Below, one piece after another: positions 1 to 41,622 of a stretch of DNA of 64,000 nucleotides (position 1 is its first letter; every line of letters starts with the position of its first letter). Position numbers and translations under genes: made by a program. The stretch is from Oikopleura dioica (Eukaryota; Animalia; Chordata): the NCBI GenBank assembly GCA_907165135.1, contig OU015567.1, forward strand, positions 7,006,001-7,070,000. Reading direction: 5' to 3'. The notes beneath the pieces are model-generated. The model was not told the origin of the DNA. It saw nothing but the letters and a program-made list of their open reading frames with translations, and ran no database searches.

Positions 1-429
1 GTCATTGGAATTTAAACGCATCATCACGAAACTTGTCCTTACTTCTGATACCGCAGAAATCTCATGCGTGCCTGGGTCGGTGACGATGTTCGCAGTAAAG
101 AAAGACAAAAAAATGGGTGATAAAACTTCTAGGGTGAATATCGTTGAAGTTTCTGACCCTCTCCGGCCACAAAATAATATCTCTATCGATGTATCATGCC
201 CTTTCAAGGATACTTACACTCTCAGGTGAGTAAAACTCAAAAGATTGACATGATTCGCTTGCCAGAAAATAACTTGAATGTTAGGTATTTGAAGAAGATC
301 GCCAAGACGCAGGGAACGTCGCCGATGGTGAAGCTTAGTTTCGAAGACGGCGTTCCGCTAATGATTGAATACGAAATCGAGACTTTTGGCGTAGCGCGAT
401 TTTTTCTTGCGCCGTTGATTCAAAACTGA
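1..429 (+). CDS. Divergent PCNA-like sliding clamp A, 5' truncated; exons <1-225 and 285-429
   Basis: Splicing the GT-AG intron 226-284 gives S-EFKRII..L...D...ISC...TYTLR|YLKKIAKTQGTSPMVKLSFEDGVPLMIEYEIETFGVARFFLAPLI. This matches the PCNA C-terminal pattern [49 protein letters not shown]. Confidence 0.9.
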
Positions 430-642
430 TTTCTGTGACCATGTTTTCCTTATTATTTTCAACTTATTTTGACTACTTACTTTTATTTTTACTATTTTTA
501 CTAACTGCCTTCGTTTCTTTAAAACACTATCTTTAAAGTATACTGCTTACTTGTTCCAACCAAATAACGCTACTCTGTCGCGAAGCGTTCTCTGCTGCTT
601 TCTGATCTAACAAAGAGTGTTCAGAAATCGGTAGCTGAGTGA

Positions 643-1319
643 ATGAGCGATTACAAGAGATTCGTCCACAACTTGAAATGTACCCTCAATTGTGTAGTTT
701 GCAGAGACGCCAGTCAAACTGCAAACCTCTACAGCTGCTGTGAGTGCAAAGTCATAATCTGTGGAGTTTGCATTGATGTGATGTCTGACGAAACCCGTCG
801 CGACAGAGTGAAATGCCCACAGTGTAATTATTTTTTGGCTAAGGTTTTGGACAAATACGTTTTTTGAAGTAACAGCTCATTTAGGGCAGTTTTATCCATC
901 TTCCTTGGGTTAACGCTGCTCTTCAGGATGTTCTCGGTACATGATAATTAATTGATCATTTTATTTATTTCTTTTTAGCCCTCGACGACCATTGCAGTCT
1001 TCAAGAAGCCACCATTTCAAAGTTGCAGGCGTCGATTGCCAATCTGGAAGAGGAAAAGAACGCCGAGCGTGCCGCAAAGTCGCACCAAAAAGCGCCGAAA
1101 TTCAAGGATGAAAATCAAGAAGACGCTCTTCGAGAAGACAAAGTAACGCCTCAAAAACGAAAATGGTATGTTAAGAAAGCTTATTCATATTGCTCCTCAG
1201 ATCTGGCATTATTTAGGCTGGCTATAAGCGGAGTTCAGTCAATCAAGACAATCTACAAGTCAACGCCTTTCATACCGAAAAAGACAAACTTAAAGGGTGA
1301 CAAACACGATTCTAGCTGA
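643..1319 (+). CDS. RING-like zinc finger plus coiled-coil protein, multi-exon; structure approximate
   Basis: 643-867 carries CVVC..CCEC..CGVC..CPQC. After an acceptor at ~978 the heptad-like sequence LQEATISKLQASIANLEEEKNAERAAK follows. Confidence 0.6.
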
Positions 1320-1482
1320 TTTGGTTGTTTTTTTTTTATTTAAATCGTCTGCGCTTCTGCCCAATAAAAAACAAATCTTTGAATTGATGTATTTGTAGGC
1401 TCTCCGTTTTGGATTCTGACAATTTGGAAATAGAAGCTTTGTTTAGCCCTGCTGACTTAAAACATACGTTAAGAATGTGAAT

Positions 1483-2280
1483 ATGGCTTCCGTCGTGTTT
1501 AAAAAGCCTGCCCTTATTATTCATGGCGTCTTCTCAACCTTCAAAAATGATAAGTTTATCCGAATGAGGTTCCGCGAAACGGGTTTCGAATTTCTAAAGT
1601 TAGTTGAAAAGGCGCCTCGTCCTTTACAACCAACAGAGCGCCTCTCAAACTACGTCTATTTGAATGAGAAGCGGCAGGTCTACGATTTTACAGGTAAAAA
1701 TATCAATAAAGATAACTTTTCACACTTTTTTACTCAACTTATACTTAATCCAGTGAAATGCCGCCAATTTAAAGAATTGCTGTTCAAAACGAGAAAAGCA
1801 GATTCACTGACATTAAAAGTCGAGGACTTCGACTCATCTAAACTTATGATAATTGGCAGTAAACGCGCGTTCGAAAAGCGTGTCGAGATTCAAGTAAGGC
1901 CCTTCAACGGTGAGCGGAAGCATGGAAGTGGGTGGCACGCGACCAGAACTGTGACACGATTCTATGACAAACGCGCAAGAATGCACAACGAGAGGGCAAA
2001 GAAGGCGAAGGAAGATGACGACTGCTCAATTGTGGAATTTTTCGTCGATAATCCTGATGAATTACCTTTTACGAATGACTATCGTGCTGGCCCGGTTACG
2101 CTTGATTTTCCACTCTCTGATTCAATGCAAGTTGATGTGCTGTCTCTCGCATCGATGTCGGTTAGGAGTATTAAGCGCAATCCCAAAATCTTCGGGAGAG
2201 CGAATGGTCGAAACGTATTTTTGCCGTCTCTTGATGACGATAAAATCGACGTTGAAGTGATGAAAATCCTTCAGTTACAG
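1483..2280 (+). CDS. Divergent PCNA-fold clamp B; probably the N-terminal module of a clamp-primase fusion
   Basis: KELLFKTRKADSLTLKVEDFDSSKLMII resembles PCNA [26 protein letters not shown], and GPVTLDFPL resembles EPVQLTFAL. Likely in-frame intron 1694-1753. The unspliced ORF stops at 2352. Confidence 0.6.
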
Positions 2281-2336
2281 GTTCAACAATATTATCTTAT
2301 GGCCTCAATTCTTATTTATAATGTGAACCCAAAAAG

Positions 2337-3697
2337 GCTAAACGAAGATTGACAACAAAAGAGTATTATCGATACCTCTTTCCTTACAAGGCTATCAAAA
2401 AACTTCTGACAAGAAATGGGGCGTTTGAATTCAAGATGCGTGACATTAGGTAAGTGATAAATTATCTTTCCGTATTTACAGCAATTAAGCTATTGCTACG
2501 ACTCGTCAAACGCTATCAAACGAGTTCGAAATTTCGTTATCCGCGACGATGTTCAGTTTATGAACATTTTGTGCAAAAAAAATCCTACACGTCTTGACGT
2601 CGGTGGGTTATTCGACACGACGACCTCTTACAGAAATGTTGCGACAGACAAACCCATAGGGCGCGAGGTTGATGCGGCAGTTCTTACGATTGTCTTCATT
2701 TGACATGTGTTTAGTTCGTGATCGACATCGACGTTACAGATTATGCGTTTCGATATTGTTGCGTCGGCAAGGGCATCTGCAATAGATGTTGGCGATTTCT
2801 TAGCGTTGCGTCACAGATTGTTGACACCACACTTCGGGAGGATTTCAATCTACGAGGAATTTTCTGGGGTTTGTCATTGGCAATAATGGTCTTCAATGAA
2901 ATTGTTTGCAGTCTTTAGCGGCCAGCGGGGGCTTCATGCTTGGTCAATGGATTCGAAATTTTTACAACACAGCCACCGAAGAAGCCTATCGATCCTTTCG
3001 TATTTGAGCAAAAAAAAAATGGCATACTATGGGAAGCGACTAGACCACACCTACTTCAAGCGTGCACTGGCTATCATCGACCGAAATTGGATTGATTTTC
3101 TCATGGAACAAGGTAATATTCTTTTGGTAAATGACCCTCTTTACATGTTATAAGAAATAATGACGTCAGATGAGAGAGTTATGAAGCTTCTACGATTCAC
3201 ACGACTGAACAGAAGCGAAAAGGAGGAGCTGCTAGAATCCATCAACACGGCTGAAACAACAGAAGAGAAATGGAATAAAGTAGAGGAACGATTAAACAAC
3301 GGGGACGTGATTGACGTGAACAGCTTGAAAGTGATTAAATTGAAAGTGCTTCTCCCCGAGATCGATGAGGCGGTAACAGCACAGAAAAGTCACCTGCTGA
3401 GGCTTCCTTTCTCAATTCACAATGAGACTGGAAAAGGTAGGCTTAATCAAGTGAACACGACGACAATTGACTTGTTTATTTGTAGTTGCATTGCCGTTCA
3501 ACGCGCCGGGTGCACAGTGGGAAGATCTTACCAAAGTTCCTTCGTTGACACTGTCGACTGATACGCTGATTATTCTAGAGCAAAGCAAAAAATACTTCGA
3601 CCATGCGCTACGTGACGCATTTTATTCAGTAACATATCAATTTTTATTCAGAGTGGTTATCTTATACTTCGCATGTCCGATCTCAAAACATTACTAG
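2337..3697 (+). CDS. DNA primase small (catalytic, AEP) subunit, PRIM1/PriS-like; exons 2337-2449, 2490-2667, 2715-2868, 2912-3112, 3155-3436, 3486-3697
   Basis: The spliced product has YYRYLFPY, NPTRLDVGG, RE|FVIDIDVTDY..CC..KGICNRCW, W|VFSGQRGLHAW and HLLRLPFSIHNETGK, the ordered PriS motifs (ELVFDID, SGRRGVHCW, HLLKSPFSVHPKTG). All introns are GT-AG; the exon sum is 1140 nt, in frame. Confidence 0.93.
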
Positions 3698-4118
3698 ATG
3701 AAATTGCAAGGTAAGTAACCGTTTTTAACCCTATGTAAAGTGTTCCTTAGTGCGACAGCGGAAACCTGCTACGACTTCTTTGCGGCGAAAATTAAGTCGG
3801 CGGTATCACGCGAAACACATATTCATCAGTACAATGTGATGATGATGCTAATGCAAAAAATGTAGGTTTTATTTGCTTGGGTTTCATCTAGCGACAAAAT
3901 AAGGGACCCAGTTGAAGCAACTCGACTTGGGCACAGATTGGCAAGGACTGTAAACTCAACAGTCTTCAATGCACAGGTAGAACTTGAGAAAGGACTTGGA
4001 AGGGACGAAAAGGAGCGGATCCAATCATGCATCGAAAGGTTTTTCTATCATATATTTCGAGACTTGATGCAGTTTCAGGACTCTCGCGAAGATCGACTAC
4101 GATAATGGGTGGACCTGA
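3673..4118 (+). CDS. Small 4-exon helical protein of unknown function (~110 aa)
   Basis: GT-AG splicing joins MSDLKTLLDEIA|SATAETCYDFFAAKIK..MQK|IDKIRDPVEATRLG..SCIE|RTLAKIDYDNGWT* into one open frame. Confidence 0.5.
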
Positions 4119-4238
4119 AGGAATGAGAAAATGTTATCGAACATGGTGCCTTTTTTTAACCGATAAAAATCGGCAACAATTGTTTTCTGTTCGTCTCAAA
4201 TAACAGTGTATCAAAACCATATCGCTCGTTTATATAGA

Positions 4239-5775
4239 ATGGAGTTTACTCTTGTTAATTCGGGCAAACTACGCAGGGCCATGATGACGGTGATTGATGA
4301 CGACCTGAGATTCAGGATAACGTTCCTGAATGGAAGCATCTGTTTTTCCGGTCATGACGATAGCATGCAGAAGTTCACGATCTGCGAACTCGACAAAGAA
4401 GTGCTTCACACTTACAAGAACTCAAACAATCTGCAGCGGACTTTTGAACGTAAGCTGAAACTCAATCTAAAAATAAAATAACAATTACCTAGTAACAAAC
4501 CCACGTCGACTGATTTGGGTTATGGAAACAGCGCCGCTGGGCGGTTATGTCTATTTCAAAGTCAGCGAGATTTCAGCGGATAGAGTCTCCGTGGTAACAG
4601 TGGCTGGCCAGAGAGAGGTGCAGTTGTACGCACATGCAGTTGAAACATTGGGGAACGAACCGTGGGATACAACGCAGTTCGACAATGATACGTTTGTCTA
4701 TTTAGAGAAGAACCGCTTCGCAACAGACATAGCCCTGCTCGCCCAAGGAAAAGATATAAAAGAAACGACTCTTAAAAAAAATTAAACATTTGCTTATCTC
4801 TTAAAAGTTGGAAAGGTGCTTGGAGTCCGAGTAATTGGCAAGAACAGATTCCAGCTATCGACTAATTGCAAACAAGAGATTATGAAGATAACCTGGGACG
4901 ATAACGAAGTCGACGAATCGCCGATGAACATCGAAAATGGAGCCGACAAACGCTGTTTCACAAATTTACAGTAAGCAATAAGAGGATTAAATTTACCCAT
5001 TATTTTCAAATAGACAATTGACGACGTTTGCAAAGAACAGCGAAGCGTGTAGCCTTGTTGCTGTGCGAATTGAAGAAGATATTCCACTTCAAATTACCGT
5101 CGATTTCGATTCTTACCAGGTGAGTTTTATTTCAAAGTGAAATCGAATGAACTCTCGCCAACCTAGGTCATTGCGCAATTCAAACTCCGTCCTGAACCAA
5201 TGAATACTGGATTTCGAGTTGTTGACCCGAATAACATGGAGGATGATCATTTAATGTTGATCCAGCACTTCGAAGATGAAACGGCCTTTCGCATGCATTC
5301 ACCTTATGCAAAAGAAAACAGGGATAGTAGCGGCGACAACGATAGTCAAAGTGCATCGGAAAATAGCGACGTCCCGATGGACGAAAACAACACGGAGAAT
5401 GCAACTACGGCGAGTTGCGAAGAGCCCAAAGACTCTTCAAAAGAAGATCCTCAGGAAAAAGTGGAAACGAATGAACAGTCAGATGAGCAAAGAATCGAGA
5501 CGGCGAAAGGACAGCATCATGATGAGCCACAGTCGGAGAAAGCAGATGTTGTCGACGAGCAAGAAAACAAAGCCGAGTGTCAGCACACTCCAATGAAAAT
5601 CGATCACAAGAGCGATGTTCCGTCGTGCGAGAAAAAAGCGAGCAACGAAGACAACGTCAGCGTTGTTTCAATGGCGGACACAAACGATAGCGATCCCGAC
5701 ACATTTGACAGTCCTCTAAACTCTGACTTCGAGTTTGAATCGCCAAACCGCTCCCCCTCTACTTCAGCAGACTAA
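4239..5775 (+). CDS. Divergent PCNA-fold clamp C with long acidic C-terminal tail (~447 aa); exons 4239-4449, 4493-4747, 4808-4970, 5014-5119, 5167-5775
   Basis: Exon sum is 1344 nt with an open frame. MEFTLVNSGKLRRAM ~ MFEARLVQGSILKKV; NLQRTFE|LTNPRRL ~ NLAMGVNLTSMSKIL; VETLGNEP ~ VEQLGIP; QLTTFAKNSEACSLVAVRIEEDIPLQI ~ [27 protein letters not shown]. The model needs one GA-AG intron (4748-4807). Confidence 0.8.
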
Positions 5776-6226
5776 ACTCTACAGCGTGAATTCATAAATA
5801 AACGGACATCATTTATTCTCGCCTGCTTACCTGCCTAGTAATCAAATCCGTCTTGTCGAATGCGAATTCTCTATTTTAATTGCTTCAAACCGCCGAAACA
5901 CTAACTGTTAACAAATGTGAGCTTGATGCATACCATTTGCCCTGTTTTTTGCCAGTTTAAACTCAAATCGTTCCCAATTCGTAAGCACGCTCCGCGTGCG
6001 CAGTATTTTATGATAGAAACCTACTTCAGTCCTTTTTGCCTTACTTAAGTGATCCAATTGACCCGCCTTAGCTTCATTGTTCGATGCTCGTACATAGTAA
6101 ACTCGCATAGCCAACTATCTCAAGCTTTAAATGTAGATGGCGTCTTTACGCTAACTGCGCTTTTTAAAATAGCGCCGCCGCTAAAAAGTTTTTTTCTTCA
6201 ATGCGCTTGGATCAGGATTTTAAATT

Positions 6227-7557
6227 ATGAGCATTCAGAATGAAAAGATTGGGAAATGATGCCAGCAGAGCGATTAATGTGACCGCAGCACCAGACACAC
6301 AAGGAAAGATACAATAATTCATAAGTTGATTAAAAAGACCTTATCTCGTAGTATTTGGTTGAACGAAACGTCAATAAATTATTCATCACTTGCAGACCAT
6401 ATCCAAGAAGTCGACACTGAAAGCTTTGCCTTAGCTGAACCAACAGCTTACGACAATCAAGACGAAAGGATGCAAAAAGAAGGTTCAGAAGATGATGAAC
6501 TCGATCCAGACGAGGAAGAATATCTGGCAGCGATTGCGAACTCCACTGACACACTCGATGCTGAGTTGGAGAGGCGCTTTATCGAAGCTGAGGAAGGGTT
6601 TAAATTCCAGATGCGCGTTTTTCGCAAAATCTTAGTTTACTTGAATATATTTTATTGATACCTACCTTAGAGCCTCTTGAATAGCTAGAAACCTGCGCAC
6701 AATAGATTATAAACCAATTTGAGTTCGAAGCAGAGTGCGCAGAATTCGAAGCTATGACGATTAATGAGCGTTATTCGGACGAGGAAATTGATGGACACTT
6801 CGAAGGAAGGAATAAAATTTAATAGAAAAAAAATAAAAGAAAGAAGGTAAAATTTTAATCCGACTGTCAGACGAAAGCAACAGTCCGTCTCCTCAAGCCA
6901 AGACTCTGGGACGACAGCGTTCGTTCGCACCGCTCTGCAATCAACGCGTTCGTCGCAATGCCATCCAACTCCACGATATTTAGGGTCGCAAATGTCATTT
7001 ACCTTTCACAAACGCCACAGAAAGATAAACAGAATTCATAAAATGCCATCCGGTAAATAGGAAATCCAGTTCAAGCTGAGTCTGAGGTGACCCTTAAAAA
7101 GTGAACAGGCTGTATTAGACCATTATGGATCTATCGACGCCTGGGAGCAGCATTGGGATGAAGAAACAGCTCAAGGGGAAAGCGACAATGAGTATCAGAC
7201 GAGGAAAGGTTGATACATGTCCATAGCTGGCAATAAATACATGATAAAACCTTTAAAAGCGATGCTGATGAAATTGAACCAGTAATGGAAAATATTTTCA
7301 TCAATAGTGAGCCGGCTCCAATTGAGATGAGAGAACACGGTCGAGTATACACCGAAGAAGAAGTCAGTGGCTTGGTAGTGGCCTACGATGATGGTCAGGC
7401 GCCAGAAGAGTTTCACTGCAACATCTGCATGAGCGAAAACATCGAAAACGTCGTCGGTCTACATTCGTGTAAACACTGTTTTCATCGCTCATGTATCCTG
7501 GACTGGTTTCGACGAAACCCGTCATGTCCAATCTGCCGTGCGAGCCAAATTGATTGA
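6227..7557 (+). CDS. Multi-exon acidic protein ending in a RING-H2 finger (putative E3 ligase)
   Basis: The last exon has CNIC..CKHCFHRSCILDWFRRNPSCPICR, a canonical C3H2C3 finger. Upstream acidic exons (6326-6658) probably belong to it; the 5' structure is uncertain. Confidence 0.7.
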
Positions 7558-7807
7558 AAGCAGGCAAACAGACGATTGGAAAAAATACGTCGAAAACCAT
7601 CGAAAGCGGGTCTTTCTTTTTTATATTTTCAAATTTTTCATATTTTTGCATCTCTGCATATAAACACATTTTGTACCTCAAGAGCAGCCATTCTATTCCT
7701 TAAAAGTTCACAAACTCAACAGATACTCGATTATAATACACCCTTTTAACATTAACACGTGAATCAACCCTTATCACAGAATTTAAGCGAACCACGATTT
7801 TCAGATT

Positions 7808-8439
7808 TTGATGGATCCCCTTGTTGTTGTGCAATCAGTCGTCCTTGAGTCAATTGGAACAGGAGAAGCCAATAAACATTTTAGAAAAGGAAAACAAAAA
7901 CATATTAACTTTATGTTTTATATAATTATATTCGGCCATTTAAAAGACGTTGTATGCAAATTGCAGCAAACCGTCACATACGTAGAAAGAAACCTGTATT
8001 TCTTAAATATTGCGCTCAGCCGGGAGGAGGATGAAGCTCCGGAAGAGCGTGGAGTTCAAATGGTGGTTGAAATGATACTCAGTCAACGTAAAGCGCGAAC
8101 ATCAGTCATTTTATAAAATATTACTAGAATCAACTCGAACAAGACTACGCAAGATAAAAAGGGAATTCAAGGTCGCCGGACGAAAGATCGAGCAATACCT
8201 GGCATCCCAGCACGGAAAAGATTGGAGGTACGAACTTTATTTCAAATCGTTCAGAAACGAAAATTAGCGAGCGAGTGAATCAACTTCAGCAGGATAATTC
8301 GAGCCCATACGAATCGACCTTATTCCTCGCGAACTGCGCAGAATCAGAATTGATGGCAATGGGAGAAGAGAATCTTCAAATACGGGACGACATCATCGCA
8401 TTGAACAACGATTCAATTCCAAGGACCTATCGCTATTAA
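7808..8439 (+). CDS. Multi-exon hypothetical protein
   Basis: Coding-like segments separated by short AT-rich GT/AG-bounded gaps; no recognisable domain. Confidence 0.35.
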
Positions 8440-8551
8440 ATTCCATCTGTCATGCGATTACTGTACACAATCGCTCGCTCCGCTCGCACAATAAAAACTG
8501 AAAATGTGTAAACTATCTGGCACGCAGAAACAGTAAAGATTTGGTTTAAGA

Positions 8552-10898
8552 ATGGCGCAACAGCTTGTTCGCGAACACGACGGAATCGGAATCCAGCAGC
8601 TCCCACCTGAAATTATGGAGTCTCCGGAAATAAGATTTCCAGTGAGAGTTTACGACTGGCTGCCACAATACGAAAACATAGATCTGGAGAAACTCAAGAA
8701 AATGACCGCGATGCGCAAACGGGCGCTTCAAATCGTTGAAGGTACATCATTATTAATCAATGCATTCTGAACATAGTTAAGTGGCACACAAAGAATGCGT
8801 CCACAGCGCTCTCATCAGAAGACGTCTAGATAACTGCTTCTTGAGAGACACAGAAGTAGAGTTGATTGGGCTCGACAAGCAGATTCCAACAAAAGAAGAT
8901 CGAGAAAACGACATAATTTCCCACTGGACACTCAGATTGGCGTATTGCAGGCATCCTTTCCTCAGAGACTGGTTCGTCAACAACGAGATCAAGCTTTTTA
9001 AGTACAGATTTCACGCCTTATCGGATAGCTGCAGAGGACAATTTATCCAGGTAATTTTCCAAATTCAAATCTGATAACATATATAATATTTTTTGTTTTC
9101 TAGGAAACAATGAAAGGAATAAAAGAAGTGCCGGATGAGATGAAAACCAACGAGTTTATTCAAACGCTTCAAGAGTGCAATAACATCCGTCCAAATAGAT
9201 ACGTAAGGACTGGTTTCGCGATCGTTAGGTTTAAAAATTCGGTTAAAAATTTCAAAGTGACGGTCATTTGCGCGGATTTTACTTTGCGCGGAAAAATACG
9301 TAACCCTAGCTAACCCTAATCCTGATTCTCACCAGGTTGAGACCTTAAAAACTTGATTTCGGCCAAAATGCGATATCGACATATCAATCGATAGCTCTTG
9401 AGCTCCTGATTCTAATGGTGATGGTCATTTTGAGTTTCGACTCAAAAATGAGGGGAAAATGGCGTTTAGGTAGAAAATGATCATCAATTCATGATCAGAC
9501 CTTGTAACACTGAGTTTGAATTTCACAGTGACGATCATTTGCGCGGATTTAACTTTGCGCGGAAAAATACGTAACCCTAGCTAACCCTAATCCAGATTCT
9601 CACCAGGTTGAGACCTCGAAAACTTGATTTCGGCCAAAATGCGATATCAACATATCAATCGATAGCTCTTGAGCTCCTGATTCTAATGGTGATGGTCATT
9701 TTGGTTTTCGACTAAAAAAATGGGGAAAAAATGGCGTTTAGATAGAAAATAATCATTTATTCATGATCAGACCTTGAAATACGATAACGGCAAAAATTAT
9801 TGATATTGCGAACCTGAAAAAGAGAAAACTGGTATCAGGCTCCTTGGGAAGAAGTTGAAAGCATTGTTGAAAGTCGGAATCTTCACATTTCGAAAGGAAT
9901 CGGTAAGAACTAAGCGTCTTAGCTTCTCATTTAAGAAATTTTATTTAAACCTATATAAAAACGCTCATTAAGCATTTTTTTTCGAGTCAAGCATCCATGA
10001 AGCCGTGGTGGTAAAATTCCAGAAAGAATGTAACAGATGGCTCGATGGACTTGCTCTCAAATACGATTTACTGATGATTAACGAAGGCGATAGACTAGGT
10101 AAAGAAAAAAGGCTCCAAAATAATAAGACTTTCGAAAGCAAAGATACTGCCGTCGTTCGCTGTCAGCTCGTCGGAGGATTACAAATCACAACAATTGCGA
10201 ACGCTCACCTTGGAGAACTTTACTAGACTTCGACATTCGTCGTTTCCGCCCTGCAAAAAAATGCTGCTTGATAAGCTCTCGGCAGATAAAAAGCTAAAAC
10301 ACAAGGTTATTGCTTATTTCAAGAGAATGCACATACTTATTTTCAGGGAAGACAGCAACTGTGGGCATTCATACGAGAAGCCGGGATGTCGCTACAGGAA
10401 GCACTTGAATTTACCTTCGATTCAATGACCGCTTATACAGATCCGAAGGCCGAATTTGACTATCAAGTCAAATATGCATACGGAAAAGTTGGACAGCAGA
10501 AAATCACCGCGGCGGCAACATGCGGCCAAAAGATAAATACCATTAAGACGATCGGAGAGCATCATCACTGTCCATTTAACAACTTGGCAGACACGTCGCA
10601 CTTCTTGCCAAATTGGGGAATACGAAGAGAAGAAATGCCCGACATTGAATCGCTAGTAAGCAGAGGTGAATCAAAGGAAGGGGAATTTATTAACCGTATT
10701 AGAGAAAATAAGAAAAAGACGTTAGTCAGTCAGAGCAAAAATACCCTATGACAGAATGCTTGCAGGCTTTTCATGAAACTGACTCATGAGAACATAGAAG
10801 GAGCGATGAAACATATTGGCTACAAAACGCCAAATCAGTACCTCGAGCAGAGTTTGGCGTGGAATAACGAAAAGACAAACAAAAATAAAAATGCCTGA
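8552..10898 (+). CDS. DNA primase large (Fe-S) subunit, PRIM2/PriL-like, ~8 exons
   Basis: ISHWTLRLAYCRHPFLRDWFVNNEIKLFKYRF ~ [72 protein letters not shown] and TPNQY follow in PriL order, including the Fe-S cysteines. Confidence 0.93.
9250..9785. repeat. Two ~270-bp direct repeats inside a PriL intron, with telomere-like TAACCC motifs
   Basis: GCGCGGATTT(T/A)ACTTTGCGCGGAAAAATACGTAACCCTAGCTAACCCTAATCC starts at ~9271 and again at ~9541; the following ~200 bp are near-identical. Confidence 0.9.
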
Positions 10899-11089
10899 CT
10901 TTCTGCGCAAAAAAACTTTCTTATGAACTGCACAGTAGAATCTCGAAAAGTTGAGTTCAAGAGTTTAGTTTAGAATGGCCTCTTCCAATACAATGGAAAC
11001 GGAGAATGACCGCGAAGCGCAACATCGGAGGGTAAATGCGTCTATTAGAAAATGATAAATGAGTAATTTAGGATGAGTCAGTCGAAAGG

Positions 11090-12113
11090 ATGGATACATC
11101 GAATGTACCATCAGGCGAGGAACAGCCAGCGACATTATGGGACCTCGTTCCAGAAGAAGAAACTGGCTACCAAATGCGACGGTCGACAAGCGTGCAGAGA
11201 CGCGCCGAACCCGTTTTTTTCCGAGCTATGAGAGGTCGATTAGCTAGAAACCGACGCGGCAGTCGACGCAATGGCGTTGGCAACGCGAGAACTGAGCAAC
11301 CGAATCGACAAGAATCAGGAAAATGGATCTTAAACTCAAACTTTTTATTGAATTAATTTATATCTGACTACATAAGAGCACGTGAATAAATGAAACACCG
11401 ATCCGAGAACAGCGAATTCTTCAGGACCAAGTCACGCCCAAATAAATAGAGCTCAAGGAGTGAACAATATTAGCCACCGACCAGCTGAAAATTCTCAAGC
11501 TAGAAACCAACCCGAGAATTCTGTAACAGGAAAGGCATATTCACAATTACTATATTCGAAAATAGTGAGAACTTAAAATGTCGATATAAATTGCAGTCCG
11601 AGGACGAAGAGCTGGATGGTGGACCAGAGACGACGACGCCAACTGGGATCGTGATCTTCAAAGCCGACCGCAAATGTACGAGTTAATATCTAGGGTCATA
11701 AAGAAAGAAAACGTGCTTGCGTTAGACAAGTTGATATTCAATTTTTACAAGCCAACGCACGAAAATATATATATTCACACTTCGACTAACAGAGTACAGT
11801 TTTGACCCGCAAAAGCCGCGAAACAGTACATTTCTTCCATCAAAATGAGGAACAGTGGCTGAGACGACACGAAAGTCGCCGCGCACGCGAGCGAGCTGCT
11901 GCACGGCCCAGGCGATACAACCCTAGACTGCAACAGATTCACTTTACAGCCGACGAGTTGGCGAGTGATGAAATCTGCACAGTCTGCTTGAGCCCACGCG
12001 AGGCGATCATGACTCGAATACCGGGCTGCGGGCATGTCTTTCACGAGAGATGTGTCCGACCGTGGATCGAAGCGCGCGGGCAATGTCCAAACTGCCGAGG
12101 AATGGCCGCCTAG
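11090..12113 (+). CDS. Arg-rich multi-exon protein ending in a RING-H2 finger
   Basis: The last exon has CTVC..CGHVFHERCVRPWIEARGQCPNCR. Upstream exon assignment is approximate. Confidence 0.75.
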
Positions 12114-12575
12114 ACAAAAAGATTGTCTTTTTATTTTTTATTTTCTATATCACCAGCTGCTTTAGCAATTTTCTACTGCCATTTAAGTGACAATCAATCA
12201 AATATTGCCTTTCATTCTAGACCATTTGCTATTTCTCATTTTCAAAATCTGGCACGCTCCGCGTGCAAAATAAACAGAGACAAACACTCATAAAGATTAA
12301 ACTTTATCATTCTGAGACTGATCGTGATCTTAGTTAGCCAGATACATAGCAGTCCTTATCTGATCATCAAACTATTTTGAGATCCTCAATTTTTTTCGTA
12401 GAAAATGTCTGGCTAACTAAGCGCCTTTTTCAACTGCAACGTAAGGATAAAAGTGTCACTGCCATAACTCCTGTAGGGTTCACACTGTTAAATAAAACAA
12501 TTAAAAAAACTGCAAACGAACGCAGATCGATAAAAGATATTTTAAAGAGTTAACGAACAGAATTTAATTATTAGA

Positions 12576-13065
12576 ATGTTAAAAAAGGGATTTATGATTG
12601 CTAGAGACGTCATCATGGCAACAACCGATGAGGACATTGCATATAGGCTCCTCACTGCTTACGACAGTATTAGGAAGTTAAAAATTCGATTAGCCAAAGA
12701 GAATGCCAGCCAAGAAGTGCCGACTGAATCAAGAGAACTCGAAAGAGTCGGTAAATGATATCAAAATAAGAAAATGAGATTAAATTTTGTTCCTTTAGAT
12801 TATATAGAACAAAAAATCAAGTCTCTTGACAGGGATTTTGACCGACTTGGACGAATGATTGAAGAATACATGAGCTCTGACGAGCTCGAAGGCTGGAGGT
12901 ACAGAAAGCAAAATCACTTTTAAAGTAATCAATTTTAGTGACAGAACCGACGCAGTCTGTTACGACAGAGGATCGCCACTTGACGAGCTCTACGGGTTGG
13001 ATCAAGAACTTGACAATCATAACGACGAGCTTGGAGAAATGAAACGAAGATTTGGGCTGGAGTAG
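12576..13065 (+). CDS. Helical orphan, paralog 1 of a tandem triplet
   Basis: 3 exons; N-terminus MLKKGFMIARDVIMATTDEDIAYRLLTAYDSI. Confidence 0.6.
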
Positions 13066-13140
13066 ACCCCCGCGAAGGACTTATAAATGATATTTCTAAA
13101 ATAAACCATCACAGGAGTTGTTTAAAAAAAATGGTTCAGA

Positions 13141-13642
13141 ATGCTTGAGTTCGAAATCATGTTGGCCAGAGATGTCCTTTTAACAGTTGGCAATCATGAC
13201 ATTGTTCTTCAGCTGCTTGATGTCTACGACAAGATACAAGCAGTTCGAACATTGATTCGTCGATTGGGTGGACGATCGCTACTAGACGGAAATTACGAAA
13301 ACTATTTCGAGTATACAAACGAGGAGACCAGCATGGGTAAAATAAGCACAAGGGAAAATGACCCATAAATTATTTAGATCAGTTTATGGTCGACCACAAG
13401 AGTTACCAAAGGGTCGTCAAAAGCATCGGATCAAGGCTGACGAGACTCGTAGGCCTCGAGGCAAGCATCAGGTCAAAAAAACAGTTTTCTCAAAATAACA
13501 ACGGTTAAGGGACGCAATGGAGACGGACGAAGCGCAGACAGAAATTGAGCGACTTTTCACTGTCCGGGAGAATCTGACCGGCTTGGCAGATCGGATTGAA
13601 AGAAAGCGGGAAGAATTAATAAATATGACGGAGCGACAGTAA
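13141..13642 (+). CDS. Helical orphan, paralog 2 of a tandem triplet
   Basis: N-terminus MLEFEIMLARDVLLTVGNHDIVLQLLDVYDKI; similar exon layout. Confidence 0.6.
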
Positions 13643-13713
13643 TCTTTCTGTTAATTAGCCTTGATTCATTGGGAACACTTGGAAACCTATAAAGCACAAT
13701 TAAATATTTTAGT

Positions 13714-14244
13714 ATGATAAATGAAGATTTTTTGATGGCTCGTGCAACAGTGAAAGCAATTAAAAGGAAAGACATTGCGATATGGACAATCCGTGCTTAT
13801 GACACGATGGATGGTACCTCAAGAATGCTGAAACGAGTGATGGAACAAACAGTGAATGCCAACAATGCGCGCGAACTAAGCCGATTGCGACGAGAAACAG
13901 GTAAAAAAAAAAAGAAAAACGTAAAAGCCATAGTAAATAAAAATAAGAACGCGATCACCAAGACATAGTGAAGATCCAAAATGACTTCAAGATTACTGGA
14001 AGAGCGTTCAGCTCCTACCTAGCAGGCATGGGACACCGTGGGATGGAGATGTGGTAACTGATTAAAGAACACAGTTCAGAATATTAACGTTAACTTCAGG
14101 GAACGAGTAAGAAGAGCGCGACGTGACAGATATGGCCCGATTGCGCGAATTTTGGAAGTTCACCGACAACTTGTCGCCCTCACTAGGCGAGTGAAATGGC
14201 GAAAAAGATACGTCAAGCACTTCCTTACCACCGAATTAGAATAA
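13714..14244 (+). CDS. Helical orphan, paralog 3 of a tandem triplet
   Basis: N-terminus MINEDFLMARATVKAIKRKDIAIWTIRAYDTM; similar exon layout. Confidence 0.55.
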
Positions 14245-14595
14245 GGTAAATATCAAACAAAGAAAAAACTCAAAATAGCTTTAAGGATGATCTCCCACGA
14301 ACAGAGAAACAACTGCCTATGTGTTTAAGATCTAGAGTGAACTAAATAAACATTAAAAATCTATCTCAAGTTTCATATTTTCCTAGATAAATATGATCTT
14401 TTTATACACGGTTTGCAAAGAATACACGACATGCAAGAGATGCAGGAATAGGTAAAAAAGATGACCTAATCGCATAAGATCAGCTCGACTTACAGAAGCC
14501 ACTCATTATACGCAGGTGATTACCGGATGCAGAGTACACAAGCACGCTTCGCGTGCGCTATAATCAGGATCAACAAAACAAACTCACTTATTCAA

Positions 14596-14880
14596 TTATT
14601 GTAAATTATAATGATGCGCAATATCTTTCCAGTATGTTTTACGGTCGATAGGGTAGAGGTTTGCTTTTCGGGCAAATGTTTCTGAGTAAGACTTTCGAAT
14701 CTCCGCGAGTCGTTTTGCGGTAAATTCTTCGATGAATTCTTCTTCTTCAAATGACTCAGGTGAGAGCCAGTAAGGGCAATTCTCAAGGATGTAGAGTTCC
14801 TTCCCCGAAACGTCGTATTTCATGCCTTTTTTGGTAAATTTAAGACGAAGGAAATTGGTAATCTTTTTGGTAAGTTTCAT
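14596..14880 (-). CDS. Hypothetical 94-aa protein
   Basis: ATG-initiated ORF convergent with the triplet; no domain recognised. Confidence 0.45.
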   Translation of the reverse strand: MKLTKKITNFLRLKFTKKGMKYDVSGKELYILENCPYWLSPESFEEEEFIEEFTAKRLAEIRKSYSETFARKANLYPIDRKTYWKDIAHHYNLQ

Positions 14881-15209
14881 GTTTGATGGTAGTTATGCGT
14901 GAAATCGGCTGTTTTATACTATTCACAGATGTGACTACAGCCGCGCGCCAGCCATCAATGCGCGGACGTAGTTAATGCAGCTGTCAAGTTCTGCGAAAAT
15001 GAGAAGTAATTACTTTTTCATTCAAGGGAAGGTATCAAATATCTATGACATCAATTTACTTCTGAAACCAATATCACATAAAACTACATTTCTCAACCGT
15101 CTACGCTGTCGTTCCGATTCTTTTTCTTAATAAAACACAAGTGATTTTAGAAACAAAATAATTTATTTTTTTTTTATAAAGAAAACCGACAAGAAAGTCA
15201 GAACAGTTT

Positions 15210-16940
15210 TCAAAGTTCGTCACCCCAAACATCAGCTCCACCAAATGAAACAGCCACAGTTGGAGTTGACACCACGATGGAATAGTGTCCATCGCTCAGC
15301 TCTCGTTCAAGGTCGGCGAGCTGAGCGTGCTTCTCCTTGTAGAAGTTGGAGATTCGCATCAAGACGACGGACAGCGGATCGCTGCCGTTTTTGTGGACTA
15401 AAATATTTCTGTAACATGTCATAAGCATTAAAACTTACCGTTCTCCGCTTCAGTCAAAAGGGGGCGAGTGAAGGTAACCCCTGGACGCTTGATGGGCATT
15501 GGAAACAGGTGGTTTCCATAGCCAGCGTACACGGCATCCTCCGGTGTGATGCGAAGGATGGTTCTTCCATGGTTGGCGACGTTGACAGGGGCGCCTTTAA
15601 TCCAAACGACCCCGTAGCTTCCACCCCGAGCATTCTTCGACGGTGGTTGGCCGAAGACGCCCGCGTTATCCGTCGGACGCTTGCGAGAAGTGGTAGGCTC
15701 GTCGAGACCAACTTGGTCGAGCGCCTCCATGCTTCCGATTCGACGAGCGTCACGTTGCTCTACTCGTCGTTGCTGCAGAAGGCGGGGGTGAGCGTCGGCG
15801 ACGTCGGAGGGTTGCTGCGGAATTCCTTCGTATCTAAACACAAAAATTATGATCAAACAGAAGACAACCAATCTTATTGAAAATGTAAGCGTATTGTAGT
15901 GATATATAGAACCCGCAAGTTATCCTACTCCATTAATTATGATAAATACGTACCCAACTTCGAATTCTCGGGTTGGACCGAATCGGAAGAATTGTCCGCT
16001 GCCTCCCATCGATGGGGGAAACATCGGGTAGGGAAAGATGGCATTGGGGGTGAGGGAGCTGGGATGCTGGTACAATCGTGCACCCTTCACGAAATGGGGG
16101 TCCAGGCCGACGAAAGGTGAGGGCGGAAGCGGAGCTCCAATCGGCGTGCCAGGGACGAAACGATGCGGTGCGTTGAAGCCAACCGGGAACTGGAAGACAG
16201 GGTTCACACCCATCGCACCATAGGGGCTAAACGCGTACGCTGCTGGAAGGGCGCTCGGAACTCCAGGCCAGTTCGCAAAGTTGGCGCTTTGCTCCTGTGG
16301 TAAAGGAGCAGCAGGCGCGTCTTCGCCGATGTTCGTCGGGATCACTAGATTCCGAAGCCGAGGAGCACCACGCCGAGCTGCCAAGTCGCTTTCCTTTTTA
16401 CATGTTTTCAAAAAATATTACAATCCATTTAATAATAATTAATTAAAACATTTTCCTTATGGTCAGCGGGCGCCCTTTCCCATCCTGCATTCGTTCGAAT
16501 CGGACGGGCCTCAAAGAAGAAGCTAGAATCCTTTTCGTCCTGAGAATTCGGATCCCATGCTCCAAGCGTGACTTCGAGCTGGTTATCCGCTAAATTTCAT
16601 TTTTAGATATTAAAGCAATATCAAATTATTAATGTTACTCATAAAATTCATAAAATATGCAATTCAAATTTAAGTCAAGTGTAGAATATCTTTTTGCAAC
16701 ACTTACATTCATTCAGACGAGTCAGATTCTCGAGATCGACGACTTCAGGGGGGCAATCGGGACGTCGACGTCCATTTCGGTTAAAAATCGTTCCAAACTA
16801 AGAAATTTTAAAACTATTAACGTAATTTCTACAACGTACCCGATGCATATTCTCCAAAAGTTATTGTCCGAGAACTGCAACTTTGAAAACTGATTGAATT
16901 TGACCACACGATCTCTTATATACCCGTCGAAAACATCCAT
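15210..16940 (-). CDS. Multi-exon orphan with a Pro/Ala/Gly-rich central region
   Basis: The ORF pieces 16722-16940, ~16457-16580, 15920-16411, 15428-15871 and 15210-15428 can be linked by short introns (one AAG|GA donor). GC-rich coding blocks alternate with AT-rich gaps. Confidence 0.55.
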
Positions 16941-17567
16941 GTTCTAGAAACACCTGCCAACAATATCTTATGAATTTTTACAAGAAAATGATAAAAATCA
17001 ATACGAAAATGCAATAAAACAAAGAAAAGAATAAAGCTAGAAAGTAAAGAATTGGAGTAGGAATCGAGATGATGCCAGCGCGAGTAATAGTGTAATTTTG
17101 TAGAAGAAAGCCCATATATTCCAGGAGAAAAACCCAAATTTGTCAATAAAATGCCATTTTCTCAGAATTCAACCGTTAATTTTCGCTAAAATTTGGTATA
17201 TAGAATAATTATTGAGAGTTCTCAATATTTACATAGAAGAAATCCAAATGAATACACTAACTGAAGAAAAAAAGAACTTTAGAAGTGAATACATGTATGA
17301 CATACGCAAAAACGAATTTCACTCGATTCTAGAACAAAAACAACAATAAAAAAAAAACAATTGTCACAAGAGCCACTTTCAAACTTCTAATGACACAATT
17401 AAATTGCATCGATGAATTATCGCCACCGATGGCCTTCTCAATTGCAAAACCCTAATTCATACGCGGCCAAGTATTCCTAACTCGTACGTAACGCTTACTA
17501 CACAGCTCAAACCGACTACAAAACAACCGTTATCAACAAAAGACGAATCAACCGCGATAAATAGACA

Positions 17568-17864
17568 GTGATGACAAGACAGGTTAAGAAAGAAGATTAT
17601 ATTTTATTTATGCACAGATTGCACAAAAAAAAGAAAGGCCAATATTTATCGGCGTCGTTGATTCTGGCCGAAGTTGAACTCCATGCCACCGCGAGTTTTG
17701 ATGGCGATCGTGAAATGACCATTGATCACATCGTCTTCGAAAGTCTGGAAACGCTCCAGAATTTGCGCATCTTGCCGCATGAGAGATTCAACGGCAATTG
17801 CCCGTTCTGCAGGGCGGAGAGAGTCCAGTTCGAGGGCCCGATACAGCGCGTTTCGCTCGGCTAA
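17568..17864 (+). CDS. Hypothetical protein with a CPFC motif
   Basis: 98-aa ORF with GNCPFCRAE; function unknown. Confidence 0.35.
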   Translation: MMTRQVKKEDYILFMHRLHKKKKGQYLSASLILAEVELHATASFDGDREMTIDHIVFESLETLQNLRILPHERFNGNCPFCRAERVQFEGPIQRVSLG

Positions 17865-18879
17865 TATAAATATAAGGTTGGAAAATGTATCGAATCATAC
17901 CGTTGTAAGCAGCCGAGCCAGGAAGGTGCTCCACGTCTTCCGGCAAGGGTTGCTGTCGAGGCTGGGGTCGCTCCCGGGGCTGAGATGGTTGATGCTCCAC
18001 TCGGCGCTGGTCCAACACGCGTTCGCTGCTACGAGCGCGTCGAGAATCACGAACAGAGTCGGTTCGGCGAACTCTACCACGTTCCATTTCAACTTCACTC
18101 AGCTGAGACGCCGAGTCAGAGGTTGAAACATCGCTAGCAGAGGACGACGAGTAGGTATTAGCTCGTGTAGACTATAAATAAGAAGTGAATGATTATTATT
18201 AAAATTCCACCGCCAAATTATGTCAAAATAATAGTACAATGAAAATAACAATTAAAATTAATCTATAGCTCCACAGTAGACACTCAAAAATAAAAAAGAA
18301 CTTACCGGCATTTTTGGACTTTCGGCCTTTTCTCTATCCAGACAGACGAGAACTGACGAATTTGAAAACACATCCCAGAAGTTAACCAAAGTTCTAGAAA
18401 TAGTTAGAAGACGAAAAATAAAAACATGTTAAATTTGTAAACAAACACAGTTCTAGAACACCTGTTATTAAGATACCTTTAAATTTCCATTGAAGCGAAC
18501 GGAGGCGGACATGATGGATAGCAAGGACGTGAATTCAGTTGAGAGCGTGCGTAGGCGGGCAAAATGAGCCAGCTAACCCAATTGGTCGCAACGCGAGCGA
18601 CAAAACCAGTACACGAGATTTTTTGCGAGAAAGACACCAAATTTTTAAAAAATATTCAATCATATTTCCCGGAGATCTAATAAACCACGATTCACCTTCT
18701 GCCAAAAGGAAAATCATGGCTAAACCCCGTTTCTGCCAAAAACGAGGCTTAGAAATTAAATCTACAGGCAATATCATCCGAATATTTGAAAATTATATAA
18801 AATCTCGTGCAATTTATTCATAAAAAATCAATCTTAATTCTTACTTATAAAATGCAGTTCCCACAATTTCGAGCAAAAA

Positions 18880-19232
18880 ATGTTTTCTAGGGGCGATTTC
18901 ACCGAAAAAGTCCAACAGGGCGACCAAAAATTTCCCCCAACCCGCCCCCAACTCCGTTGCATCCTAACTATTTCGTGGGTACAAAAAATAAATTCCGCGA
19001 GAAATCCGTTTTCTAGGGACGCTTTCACCGAAAAAGTCCAACAGGAGGACCAAAAATTTCCCCCAACCCGCCCCCAACTTCGTTGCATCCTAACCATTTA
19101 GTGGGTACAAAAAAAATAACTTCCGCAAAAAATCCATTTTCTAGGGGCGCTTTCACCGAAAAAGTCCAACAGGGCGACTAAAAAATTTCCCCCATCCCAC
19201 CCCCAGCTACCAACCATTTCGTGAGTACAAAA
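18880..19232. repeat. Three ~127-bp tandem repeats with C-runs
   Basis: TTCTAGGG..TTTCACCGAAAAAGTCCAACAGG..AAAAATTTCCCC(C)A..CC.CCCCCA; TTCTAG at 18885, 19011 and 19139. Confidence 0.92.
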
Positions 19233-19238
19233 TGGCTG

Positions 19239-19445
19239 GCCAGTTGGGAATGGCACGCTCCGCGTGCCCAATATTATTCGAGGGGAAATAAGTTGGGAAG
19301 GGTTGGTTAGTTGGGAAGGTGGGCCAGTTGGGAATGGCACGCTCCGCGTGCAATATAAAATTCGAGAGAAAGTAAGTTGGGGAGGGTTGGTTAGTTGGGA
19401 AGGTGGGCCAGTTGGGAATGGCACGCTCCGCGTGCAATATAAAAG
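19239..19445. repeat. About 2.5 copies of an 84-bp repeat, each with the hairpin GCACGC-TCC-GCGTGC
   Basis: GGCCAGTTGGGAATGGCACGCTCCGCGTGC; hairpins at 19253, 19337 and 19421. Confidence 0.93.
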
Positions 19446-19865
19446 TCGAGAAAAATAAATTCGAGAAAAATGGAGTTTTTTTGCGCGGAAAACATTTGCG
19501 CGGAAAAAAAAATGCACGAAAGTGAATTTGCCAGGTTTTCGTGCAAGTGCCATTCGCGCAACACGATTTCCGAGCAATTACCATTCGAGTTTTGCGATTT
19601 TGGGGCAATTCTTATTCGCGCACTTTTATTTCCGTGCAGTCCAATTGGCCCCTGGAAGTCATTAATTTTATCGTGGATTTTCTTTATCAACGAAAACATA
19701 ATTATAAATTACTATCATGTCTTGATTGGACATAATTTGATCATTAATTGATTGTTGAACTTTAATTTCCAAACCTCGATCGAAGCGCTGAAAGGTAATT
19801 GTTTGTTATGCTCTGTTCCTGGGAAAATTAGGTCTTTCCTAGGCTCGTCAATAGAAGATGAGAAC

Positions 19866-28315: not shown

Positions 28316-28568
28316 TGCCGCTACGCCGCAACGCTCAAAGCACCAGATGAAACCTCATTTTTTTTTGATATCAAGAAGAGTCTCTGTTCAGAAAATATCA
28401 ACGTAGAATTTCAAAAAAACAACGATTACTACTATTAAGATATATAATAAATAAATATACTAAATTAACATTTTCTGTTTCCTTGAATATTGGCTTTGGC
28501 TGAAGTCATTTGATCAAATATTAGCATTATATGAAGGAGAAAACGTATTTCATGCAACTCAACGAAAA

Positions 28569-30709: not shown

Positions 30710-31622
30710 TCCACGACTTTCGATCTGAAACGAGCACTTTTGTCGACAGCGAAGCGGACGGAATTTTCAAATTTTCATATTTTTTGAAAGATCTTTCCGA
30801 AAATGCGATCGGATACAGCGTCAACAAAAATGTTGATTTTTCACGGATTTTGATGGAGAAGAACTTTTGCATTCTGCGGGTTACAAATGACGAAGAATCG
30901 GATTTCTGGATTTTTGCCAGGAAGAAACAATCCAACGATTTATCAACGGGCAATCGACTTGTTTAGAAGAACTATTCGACCAAATGCAGAGTTCTGAGTT
31001 CCTCTCGCCAGTCACGAAAGATCTGTTAATTAGAATTGATGACAACGAAAAAGCTGCTTCGAACAGAGCTAGGGTTCCGCACGATTGGAGGACCTTATTT
31101 TTCAAAATCCGAATCCTTATTATATCAAAAATAGACTTTTTATAAACTATGGGTTTTCGAATACGGCGAAAAAATGATGACAATAATATTCCGATTCACC
31201 ATCGGAGTCGCCGATTTTTCTCGGTTTTTCATACTTCTAGTGGCAGCACAAACTTTTCTTTAACACTGTAGATAGAATCAACCCTAAAAATCACAAATCT
31301 GCAAAAACAAATTTAAAAAAATTCAAGGTTTTTATGTGCTGTCCATTTGAAAATTATCCATTATTTATCATTATGTGAAAATTGAGGAGGCGCGCTCTGA
31401 TTGGCTGATGAGGAAGACATTCTCAAGAGTCGATTTGAAGGAAGATTATTCTAAGCTTCCGCGATTTTGTCCTTGTTGGTGAAAAAGCCCTTTCTCGATA
31501 AGATTTTAAATAGAAACCATAACAAAGTAAAAATCTTGGATAATTTGACTTTTTTCAACAATGGGTGAGGGCGGGGTTGGGGACATAACTGAGATTGATC
31601 ACCTCAGAGTCCAACGCCGATC

Positions 31623-34160: not shown

Positions 34161-34205
34161 ATCCCGGATCCGTGTTTTCCAAGCTAGAAAGCTTTTGAAA
34201 AAAAT

Positions 34206-34276
34206 GAGACGCGGGTTGGATTCGAGCTCGCCATCTCGTCTGCTCGAAGAGAAGCGCTCACCACTGAGCCAACTCC
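34206..34276 (-). other. Degenerate tRNA-like or SINE-head sequence
   Basis: The reverse complement has the A-box TGGCTCAGTGG and the B-box-like GAGCTCGAATCC at tRNA spacing; the acceptor stem does not pair. Confidence 0.4.
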
Positions 34277-34478
34277 AGGGTGACAGTGCAGTGCAGTACT
34301 CGATTCATATTTCCGCGAAGAGCGCCAGCCAATCAGCGCGCAGCAGGCCTCCTTGGCAAAATATACTTTGAAGCCCTTAAAAGGGCTGAAGGGGGATTTT
34401 CTGGAAAAACAGAGGCCAGGAATGAATTTCTAGGCATTATTTTGGTGGAATCTCCAAATTTTATTAAAATGAAAAATT

Positions 34479-35790: not shown

Positions 35791-35792
35791 GC

Positions 35793-36818: not shown

Positions 36819-36833
36819 ACTCTAAGCATCAGA

Positions 36834-41548: not shown

Positions 41549-41622
41549 TGGCCAGTACGGGGATCGAACCCGCGACATTCGCGTTATTAGCACGACGCTC
41601 TAACCAACTGAGCTAACCGGCC
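41549..41622 (-). tRNA. tRNA-Ile (AAT)
   Basis: Reverse complement GGCCGGTTAGCTCAGTTGGTTAGAGCGTCGTGCTAATAACGCGAATGTCGCGGGTTCGATCCCCGTACTGGCCA forms a full cloverleaf with anticodon AAT. Confidence 0.95.

Follow-up and report, generated by a model that had tools for sequence, protein, structure and literature searches.

The locus and its annotation

The sequence examined was a 64,000-nucleotide stretch of chromosome 2 of the larvacean tunicate Oikopleura dioica OKI2018_I69 (OU015567.1:7,006,001-7,070,000), referred to here as the window. The left-hand part of the window and the sequence just beyond its left edge carry a cluster of replication-fork genes comprising at least two genes for the clamp PCNA (PCNA-a and PCNA-b), probably a further one (gene 3), genes for the small, catalytic and the large subunit of primase (PriS and PriL), three RING genes and several orphans. 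An earlier note, made from the sequence alone, had described this block as a private, intron-rich replisome cassette and probably the arm of a giant endogenous DNA virus or element in an animal genome. The animal host was borne out. When the best PriL exon (10290-10748) was compared with a set of 1.84 billion representative proteins, one near-identical match was returned, the product of OKI2018_I69 chr2 gene g5898 (P0001), and the genomic record that carries P0001 (L001) is 100% identical to positions 1-21356 of the window. L001 extends the window leftward by 1,449 bases, giving the analysis a leftward reach of ~1.4 kb.

O. dioica has a compact genome with very short introns, operons and fast-evolving proteins. 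The G+C content is flat throughout (0.40-0.43) and the introns of the block are short GT-AG introns of 40-78 nt, equal in size to those of the canonical genes. Pfam scans were run on stop-to-stop open reading frames (ORFs), with spliced genes scanned exon by exon; joined exons were used inside splice-model tests only. Spliced alignments were made with our own protein-to-DNA aligner, which accepted GT/GC-AG introns and disallowed frameshifts. The guides were P0153, a canonical O. dioica-type PRIM2 protein, and a 261-aa canonical PCNA model read from contig L006.

Public gene models of positions 1-11356 (L001:1-12805) proved unreliable, being fused or absent. A 798-aa product merges PCNA-a, PCNA-b and RING1 and yields domain matches to PCNA_N, Rad1, PCNA_C and PCNA_N, that to Rad1 being weak and overlapping. 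A 528-aa product joins gene 3 to the 3' part of PriS, and in the PriL model P0001 the conserved exons at 9825-10305, which include the first iron-sulphur (Fe-S) cysteine, are missing and an exon of the next gene is added. Two of the RING genes (RING2 and RING3) and the single-exon frame termed ORF291 have no public annotation. Literature searches on primase, PCNA, endogenous viruses and replication paralogues in Oikopleura returned nothing on this locus, and no published report of PCNA or primase paralogues in O. dioica was found.

PCNA genes

PCNA-b begins 555 bp to the left of the window and spans positions -555 to 429 (L001:894-1878). It was modelled as five exons encoding 263 aa with no stop. 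The upstream exons match PCNA_N (PF00705; E = 2.2e-7) and PCNA_C (PF02747; E = 1.2e-5), both domains being present, and the matches obtained in the PDB are PCNA. The model aligns to residues 1-257 of the canonical O. dioica-type PCNA with 88 of 256 residues identical. Its exons scored 31.1, 25.9 and 33.7 bits in Pfam, compared with 97.7, 101.6 and 53.5 bits for the canonical gene on L006. Strong divergence had been claimed for the replication genes of the block and was upheld, the copies being ~34-39% identical to the canonical proteins with Pfam scores about one third of the canonical ones. A second PCNA gene, PCNA-a, lies to the left of PCNA-b; only its 3' exons are visible, and these start exactly at guide residue 134.

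Gene 3, which ends in a long acidic tail, is probably a PCNA-derived paralogue and the third of the cluster. Its first exon, of 211 nt, ends in phase 1, the same as exon 1 of PCNA-b, and the intron before exon 5015-5119 lies in phase 2 at the aligned position of PCNA; two intron positions therefore coincide with those of PCNA. Exon 5015-5119 aligned to the last exon of canonical PCNA with a z-score of 5.1 and to that of PCNA-b with a z-score of 7.1, and none of 500 shuffles reached the score. No Pfam or PDB match was returned for gene 3 when scanned exon by exon, and its spliced alignments to canonical PCNA and to PCNA-b scored within the range of shuffled sequences.

ORF291 had been counted among three PCNA-fold genes. 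It gave no match in Pfam, the PDB or protein databases, including a search of 5.8 billion proteins in which not even a self-match was returned, and an exact look-up of its product gave no record. Alignments to the PCNA guides reached z-scores of at most 2.8 and spliced alignments scored within the shuffle range. An AlphaFold model made without an alignment (pLDDT 33.6) was unusable, and the claim that ORF291 is a PCNA-fold gene is not supported, no PCNA similarity being detectable in its sequence. The count of three thus survives in part, with PCNA-b assigned by Pfam and the PDB, gene 3 probable only, and ORF291 unsupported.

Primase subunits

Both primase subunits were recovered as the earlier note had them. 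For PriS, positions 1-156 of the 163 of PF01896 span three consecutive exon ORFs (2715-2915, 2887-3150 and 3154-3558), with scores of 35.0 bits on the first and 31.1 bits on the third against a curated cut-off of 26.8. The motif SG-x-RG-x-H is kept, as the quoted SGQRGLHAW in 2896-3153. Comparison with yeast PriS (4lim_A; E = 3.7e-13) showed that the D-x-D motif (as D-I-D) and the zinc-knuckle cysteines (CC..C..C) are also kept. A stop-free GT-AG path runs from ATG to stop and includes the exons supported by Pfam, which is a weak test.

PriL matches PF04104 at 10099-10425 and 10290-10748, and the N- and C-terminal domains PF26466 and PF04104 occur in order in its annotated product P0001 (precomputed matches). 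Spliced alignment to canonical PRIM2 covered guide residues 8-465 with 175 of 453 residues identical (39%), along a path free of stops. A single in-frame stop in an earlier PriL model was discarded as an artefact of the insertion state of the aligner; with stops forbidden, the model was stop-free and retained the same shared introns. All four Fe-S cysteines are kept, as defined by alignment columns that are cysteine in at least 80% of 103 PriL sequences. Across the columns conserved in at least 80% of the same sequences, the copy keeps 40 of 55 and the canonical protein 45 of 55, so that the copy retains 73% of conserved columns against an overall identity of 39%.

Apart from the self-match, the PriL exon was closest among the representative proteins to P0002, a full-length ordinary PriL that matches human PRIM2 at E = 1e-60, compared with only 1e-16 for the annotated PriL of the window. 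The closest relative of P0002, P0153, shares a 90% cluster with OKI2018_I69.PAR.g11522, the canonical PRIM2 of the same genome, which lies on the PAR chromosome in a run of housekeeping genes, downstream of proteasome-alpha and RPL13A. Between O. dioica lineages, canonical PRIM2 retains 83% identity. In pairwise comparison the window PriL scored 132 bits with O. dioica canonical PRIM2, the next four sequences scoring 106, 87, 63 and 49 bits. A neighbour-joining tree of 44 PriL sequences placed the copy as sister to the O. dioica-type clade of P0002, P0153 and P0154 in 69 of 100 bootstraps. A search with P0001 returned the self-match only, which makes the copy single-copy in the annotated proteome, within a method that needs close similarity and a collection that seemingly leaves the Bergen proteome outside.

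One PriL intron is ~620 nt long and contains a unit of 271 bp repeated twice in tandem at 92% identity (9248-9782), with CCCTAA motifs resembling telomere repeats; no further copies of the unit are present in the window. At the canonical locus, PRIM2 begins ~80 bp downstream of RPL13A, itself preceded by the proteasome-alpha gene (L004:4787-7453), and an environmental transcript contig (L003:211-2459) holds RPL13A and an intron-free PRIM2 ORF 75 bp apart. The latter contig looks like a polycistronic operon transcript.

Shared introns and origin of the copies

Canonical counterparts are present elsewhere. Od-PCNA was cloned by Kugler et al. (2011; PMC3034685), who identified it through a reciprocal best match with Ciona PCNA. 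The primers given there for Od-PCNA are absent from L001 and both are present in the O. dioica-like environmental contig L006. Because canonical PRIM2 lies on PAR and a conserved Od-PCNA elsewhere, the PCNA and PRIM2 relatives of the cluster are, judged by sequence, extra and diverged copies beside the conserved genes. The earlier description of the copies as private agrees with this; they are not the only PCNA and PRIM2 genes of the genome.

Intron positions were compared by guide residue and phase. Canonical PRIM2 has introns at 69/1, 90/1, 159/0, 220/1, 262/1, 318/0, 372/1 and 488/2. The PriL copy has introns at 69/1, 159/0, 220/1, 262/1 and 318/0, in addition to the long intron near residue 190 and one near residue 425; five (69/1, 159/0, 220/1, 262/1 and 318/0) are therefore identical in position and phase. 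Canonical PCNA has introns at 69/1, 106/0, 133/2 and 209/2 and PCNA-b at 69/1, 108/0, 133/2 and 209/2, three being exact and one falling within two codons. The probability of such sharing by chance was calculated as ~3e-11 for PriL and ~2e-7 for PCNA. GT-AG sites are kept at all shared introns. The claim that all genes of the block are interrupted by tiny host-style introns holds for the short GT-AG introns themselves but fails for ORF291, which consists of a single exon.

All named Pfam and PDB matches of the PCNA, PriS and PriL genes are cellular and eukaryotic, and none is viral; no primase of the UL52, LEF-1/LEF-2 or D5 type was among the matches of the proteins of the window. Since intron positions are shared and the nearest relatives are host genes, the copies are read as host-derived, and not as genes of viral origin into which host-style introns were inserted afterwards. 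Those of PCNA and PriL are accordingly duplicates, made at the DNA level, of intron-bearing host genes, and have since diverged to ~34-39% identity. Conserved residues together with open frames indicate purifying selection on the predicted products, not decay. A search for neighbours co-duplicated from the canonical PRIM2 and PCNA loci found only a 15-aa match (E = 0.02), which was dismissed.

The block on chromosome 2 is therefore probably a compact cluster, specific to the lineage and on one strand, of host replication-fork paralogues that have diverged strongly and would encode an alternative primase and clamp set.

RING genes, orphans and layout of the cluster

The remaining genes of the cluster are listed in Table 1 with those already described. 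Three RING genes interleave with the replication genes, in agreement with the earlier note, their fingers lying at 643-864 (weak), 7237-7554 and 11790-12110; RING3 and RING2 are 31% identical across the finger. The orphan upstream of PriL bears a faint likeness to the orphans at 12.5-13.4 kb, seen in an internal BLAST match of 8076-8264 to 12759-12920 (E = 1e-5). Co-orientation, which had been claimed for the whole block, extends up to ~14.2 kb, beyond which two annotated orphan genes lie on the minus strand.

Table 1. Features of the cluster and its right-hand boundary (window coordinates).
Feature	Position	Strand	Evidence
PCNA-b, 3' part; diverged PCNA paralogue	1..429	+	PCNA_C 4.8e-8 on 178-426
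RING1; RING-like zinc finger and coiled-coil tail	643..1319	+	PF25080 1.5e-4; weak finger 643-864
ORF291; single-exon orphan, 291 aa	1477..2352	+	open frame; not publicly annotated
PriS paralogue (primase small, catalytic subunit); multi-exon, 5' end uncertain	2416..4105	+	PF01896
Gene 3 (PCNA-c), probable PCNA paralogue; long acidic C-terminal tail	4239..5775	+	exon and intron similarity to PCNA
Orphan ORFs with acidic stretches; unannotated	6049..6658	+	no Pfam match
RING2; RING-H2 gene, unannotated	7237..7557	+	zf-RING_2 2e-10
Orphan gene; faint likeness to 12.5-13.4 kb orphans	7787..8436	+	no Pfam match
PriL paralogue (primase large subunit); 7-9 introns	8552..10898	+	PF04104 7e-16; spliced alignment
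Small Arg-rich orphan	10975..11356	+	no Pfam match; exon wrongly joined to PriL in P0001
RING3; RING-H2 gene, 5' end uncertain, unannotated	11590..12113	+	zf-RING_2 1.8e-10 on 11790-12110
Two annotated orphan genes (12594-13065 and 13159-14244)	12350..14244	+	no Pfam family
Two annotated orphan genes (15210-16848 and 17646-18311)	15210..18311	-	no Pfam match
Tandem array, 126 bp x 2.6	18873-19205
Tandem array, 84 bp x 3; unit holds palindrome and TATA-like motif	19238-19489
Host phosphodiesterase gene start; right-hand neighbour	19470..21356	+	PF00233 PDEase_I on annotated product

The first five genes lie on one strand at spacings of 63-213 nt, and an AG is found a few bases before several of the ATGs. 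Operons of Oikopleura consist of same-strand genes a few tens to ~200 nt apart, whose transcripts are resolved by spliced-leader (SL) trans-splicing, and the predicted layout of the cluster is operon-like in the manner of these host operons. A palindrome of 15-16 nt (GCACGC-TCC-GCGTGC) followed by an A/T-rich, TATA-like stretch recurs in the region, with seven matches against 0.01 expected. It occurs between cluster genes at 5984-5999, 12251-12266 and 14541-14556 and within the 84-bp array at 19252-19267, 19336-19351 and 19420-19435. One possibility is a promoter or terminator element common to these genes.

Right-hand boundary and remainder of the window

The tandem arrays that the earlier note placed at the end of the block are present, both immediately upstream of the host phosphodiesterase gene. 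They are short, and no matching terminal repeat for the block end, such as an element would be expected to carry, was found within the window. Pairs of TTTGCGCGGA spaced 15-16 nt apart, which we take to resemble E2F-type sites, occur at 9267-9292, 9538-9563, 19480-19504 and 24822-24831 (seven matches against 0.2 expected). They fall in each copy of the 271-bp duplication of the PriL intron and, once more, immediately ahead of the phosphodiesterase gene.

Between 20100 and 57000 at least nine copies of a palindromic repeat of ~100-170 bp were found, resembling miniature inverted-repeat transposable elements (MITEs) and in many cases arranged as inverted pairs. The repeat consists of a GC-rich hairpin between runs of A and T together with the palindrome CCTGACTCAGG; examples lie at 20104-20272, 24444-24533, 42445-42622, 46591-46768, 49489-49838 and 53340-53590. 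Two long orphan ORFs of 501 and 334 codons with no family match (28464-35787) stand on either side of a tandem array of 46 units of 56 bp (31623-34160), in which the local G+C content is 0.52 and A is strongly in excess over T. Two foldback-like elements of ~1 kb (35792-36935 and 60722-61782), 25 kb apart and 95-98% identical, contain internal inverted arms and micro-arrays of 16-17 bp (GGACTCTCGCCCAAGT). Ordinary host genes in this part of the window include a tRNA-Ile(AAU) gene (41549-41622, minus strand) and an ORF of 282 codons that encodes a helix-loop-helix domain (59392-60237, minus strand; HLH, E = 1.2e-10).

Interpretation and alternative explanations

The PCNA and PriL genes of the cluster arose by duplication of intron-bearing host genes at the DNA level followed by divergence, and PriS probably has the same origin. 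The PriS and PriL copies would then form an alternative, second primase heterodimer, and PCNA-a, PCNA-b and perhaps gene 3 would supply one or more alternative clamps, possibly as a mixed trimer. As partner ubiquitin ligases, the RING proteins may target the primase and clamp products. The set would find its use in a specialised replication setting, for example in endocycling or germline nuclei. That these parts make up a self-contained second priming-and-clamp module within one operon-like locus (PriS-PriL, two to three PCNAs as a possible mixed trimer, and RING ligases), serving specialised replication in endocycles or the germline or else carried as host-derived cargo of an unrecognised large element, is a tentative proposal that we would sooner doubt than adopt. 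PCNA and both primase subunits are normally single-copy and slowly evolving in animals, and a second set of them in a chordate, clustered and under constraint, would, if true, be a sign of specialised machinery for replication. Endocycles are used heavily by Oikopleura, whose life cycle is very rapid and which has undergone other expansions of cell-cycle paralogues.

Several observations weigh against a host-derived cluster. Duplicates of three unlinked host genes lie side by side, which capture by a mobile or viral element explains more simply, and the left flank was seen for 1.4 kb only, so that hallmark genes could lie beyond. The bootstrap support for the position of PriL is moderate (69%) and the branch of the copy is long. 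PriS was compared by PDB and Pfam only, and its host origin is putative. Contigs of the JGI metagenome collection gave no relative of the PriL copy although O. dioica-type PRIM2 and PCNA contigs are found there, a weak negative in a search that needs close similarity. The region is poorly annotated in public records, models being fused or missing, and the functional role of the cluster is a prediction made wholly from sequence.

Another proposal is that a large DNA virus or a giant mobile element, now endogenous and perhaps domesticated, captured intron-bearing PCNA, PRIM1 and PRIM2 genes of the host for its own replication and has this block as its cargo or arm. Such an origin would explain how genes of matching function came from unlinked host loci to lie on one strand within ~12 kb. 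It would also sit well with the strong divergence of the cluster genes, the many orphans without a homologue in 5.8 billion proteins, the tandem arrays at the right end, a left flank that lies outside the sequence read beyond 1.4 kb, and the missing counterpart in the JGI collection. However, Pfam scans of ORFs and annotated products across -1449 to 19450 revealed no capsid, packaging ATPase, PolB, D5-type helicase-primase, integrase or transposon hallmark domain. The nearest relatives are the host's own genes: the PriL copy falls with the O. dioica-type PRIM2 clade, its pairwise scores are highest with host PRIM2, and its introns, like those of PCNA-b, are common to the host genes. All named matches are cellular, the PriL copy occurs only once in the annotated proteome, and uniform G+C content and host-sized introns give no compositional break. 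The arrays are short, are unmatched as a terminal repeat within the window and share their motif with intergenic sites of the cluster, the right-hand neighbour is a host phosphodiesterase gene and the spacing of the first five genes resembles that of host operons. We consequently regard the viral or element origin favoured by the earlier note as quite unlikely. Grouping with host genes, as seen here, was among the outcomes that the note itself named as refuting its reading; being the only copies was another, and was not observed. Diverged replication genes accompanied by orphans can mimic a virus in scans, and introns held in common with the canonical genes are a quick and strong discriminator.

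Decay would be an alternative route to the same divergence, the genes being functionless duplicates, relics or unprocessed pseudogenes left by host replication genes and adjacent by accident. Very high divergence, public gene models that are poor or absent, environmental searches that yielded no transcripts, and the orphan status of ORF291 and other neighbours would all fit. A divergence of ~60% at the amino acid level should nevertheless have brought stops or frameshifts, and none was counted in PCNA-b or PriL, while PriS has a stop-free path. GT-AG sites are kept at all shared introns, catalytic and Fe-S residues are kept, and the conserved columns of PriL stand at 73% against 39% overall, which makes relics improbable. 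An assembly artefact, either a chimeric junction at about 19.5 kb or the collapse or misplacement of a contig, is extremely unlikely. An assembler might in principle be confused by the repeats at 18.9-19.5 kb, but the arrays amount to only ~600 bp, far below the length of long reads, and the window matches a chromosome-scale record exactly across 21 kb. Composition and intron style are alike on both sides of the arrays, and the gene cluster lies wholly on one side of them.

Comparison with known systems

In gene families, domain order, catalytic motifs, Fe-S cysteines and intron sizes, the cluster of host-derived paralogues resembles canonical PRIM1, PRIM2 and PCNA of O. dioica. It differs in that its copies are 34-39% identical to the canonical proteins and are gathered together, whereas the canonical genes are dispersed among housekeeping genes. 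Giant endogenous elements of the Nucleocytoviricota and Mirusviricota likewise bring replication genes into one block of a host chromosome, accompanied by numerous orphans and by some repeats, and intron-bearing viral genes occur in some giant endogenous viral elements. In contrast to these, the part of the cluster that was read contains no hallmark gene, viral nearest relative or compositional island, its introns are common to host genes, and its primase is of the two-subunit cellular type.

Clamps built from several paralogues include the heterotrimeric PCNA1-3 of Crenarchaeota and the eukaryotic Rad9-Hus1-Rad1 complex. The cluster is similar in that several distinct PCNA-fold genes occur in one genome, here two to three adjacent to each other, and it is this analogy that invites the idea of a mixed trimer. 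Unlike Rad9-Hus1-Rad1, the cluster copies derive recently from host PCNA itself and not from the 9-1-1 genes. The lineage-specific paralogue expansions of cell-cycle and chromatin genes in O. dioica (CDK1, Aurora and histone variants) are alike in that essential and conserved genes, normally single-copy, have been duplicated and have diverged; the cluster on chromosome 2 stands apart in bringing duplicates of different genes together in one locus.

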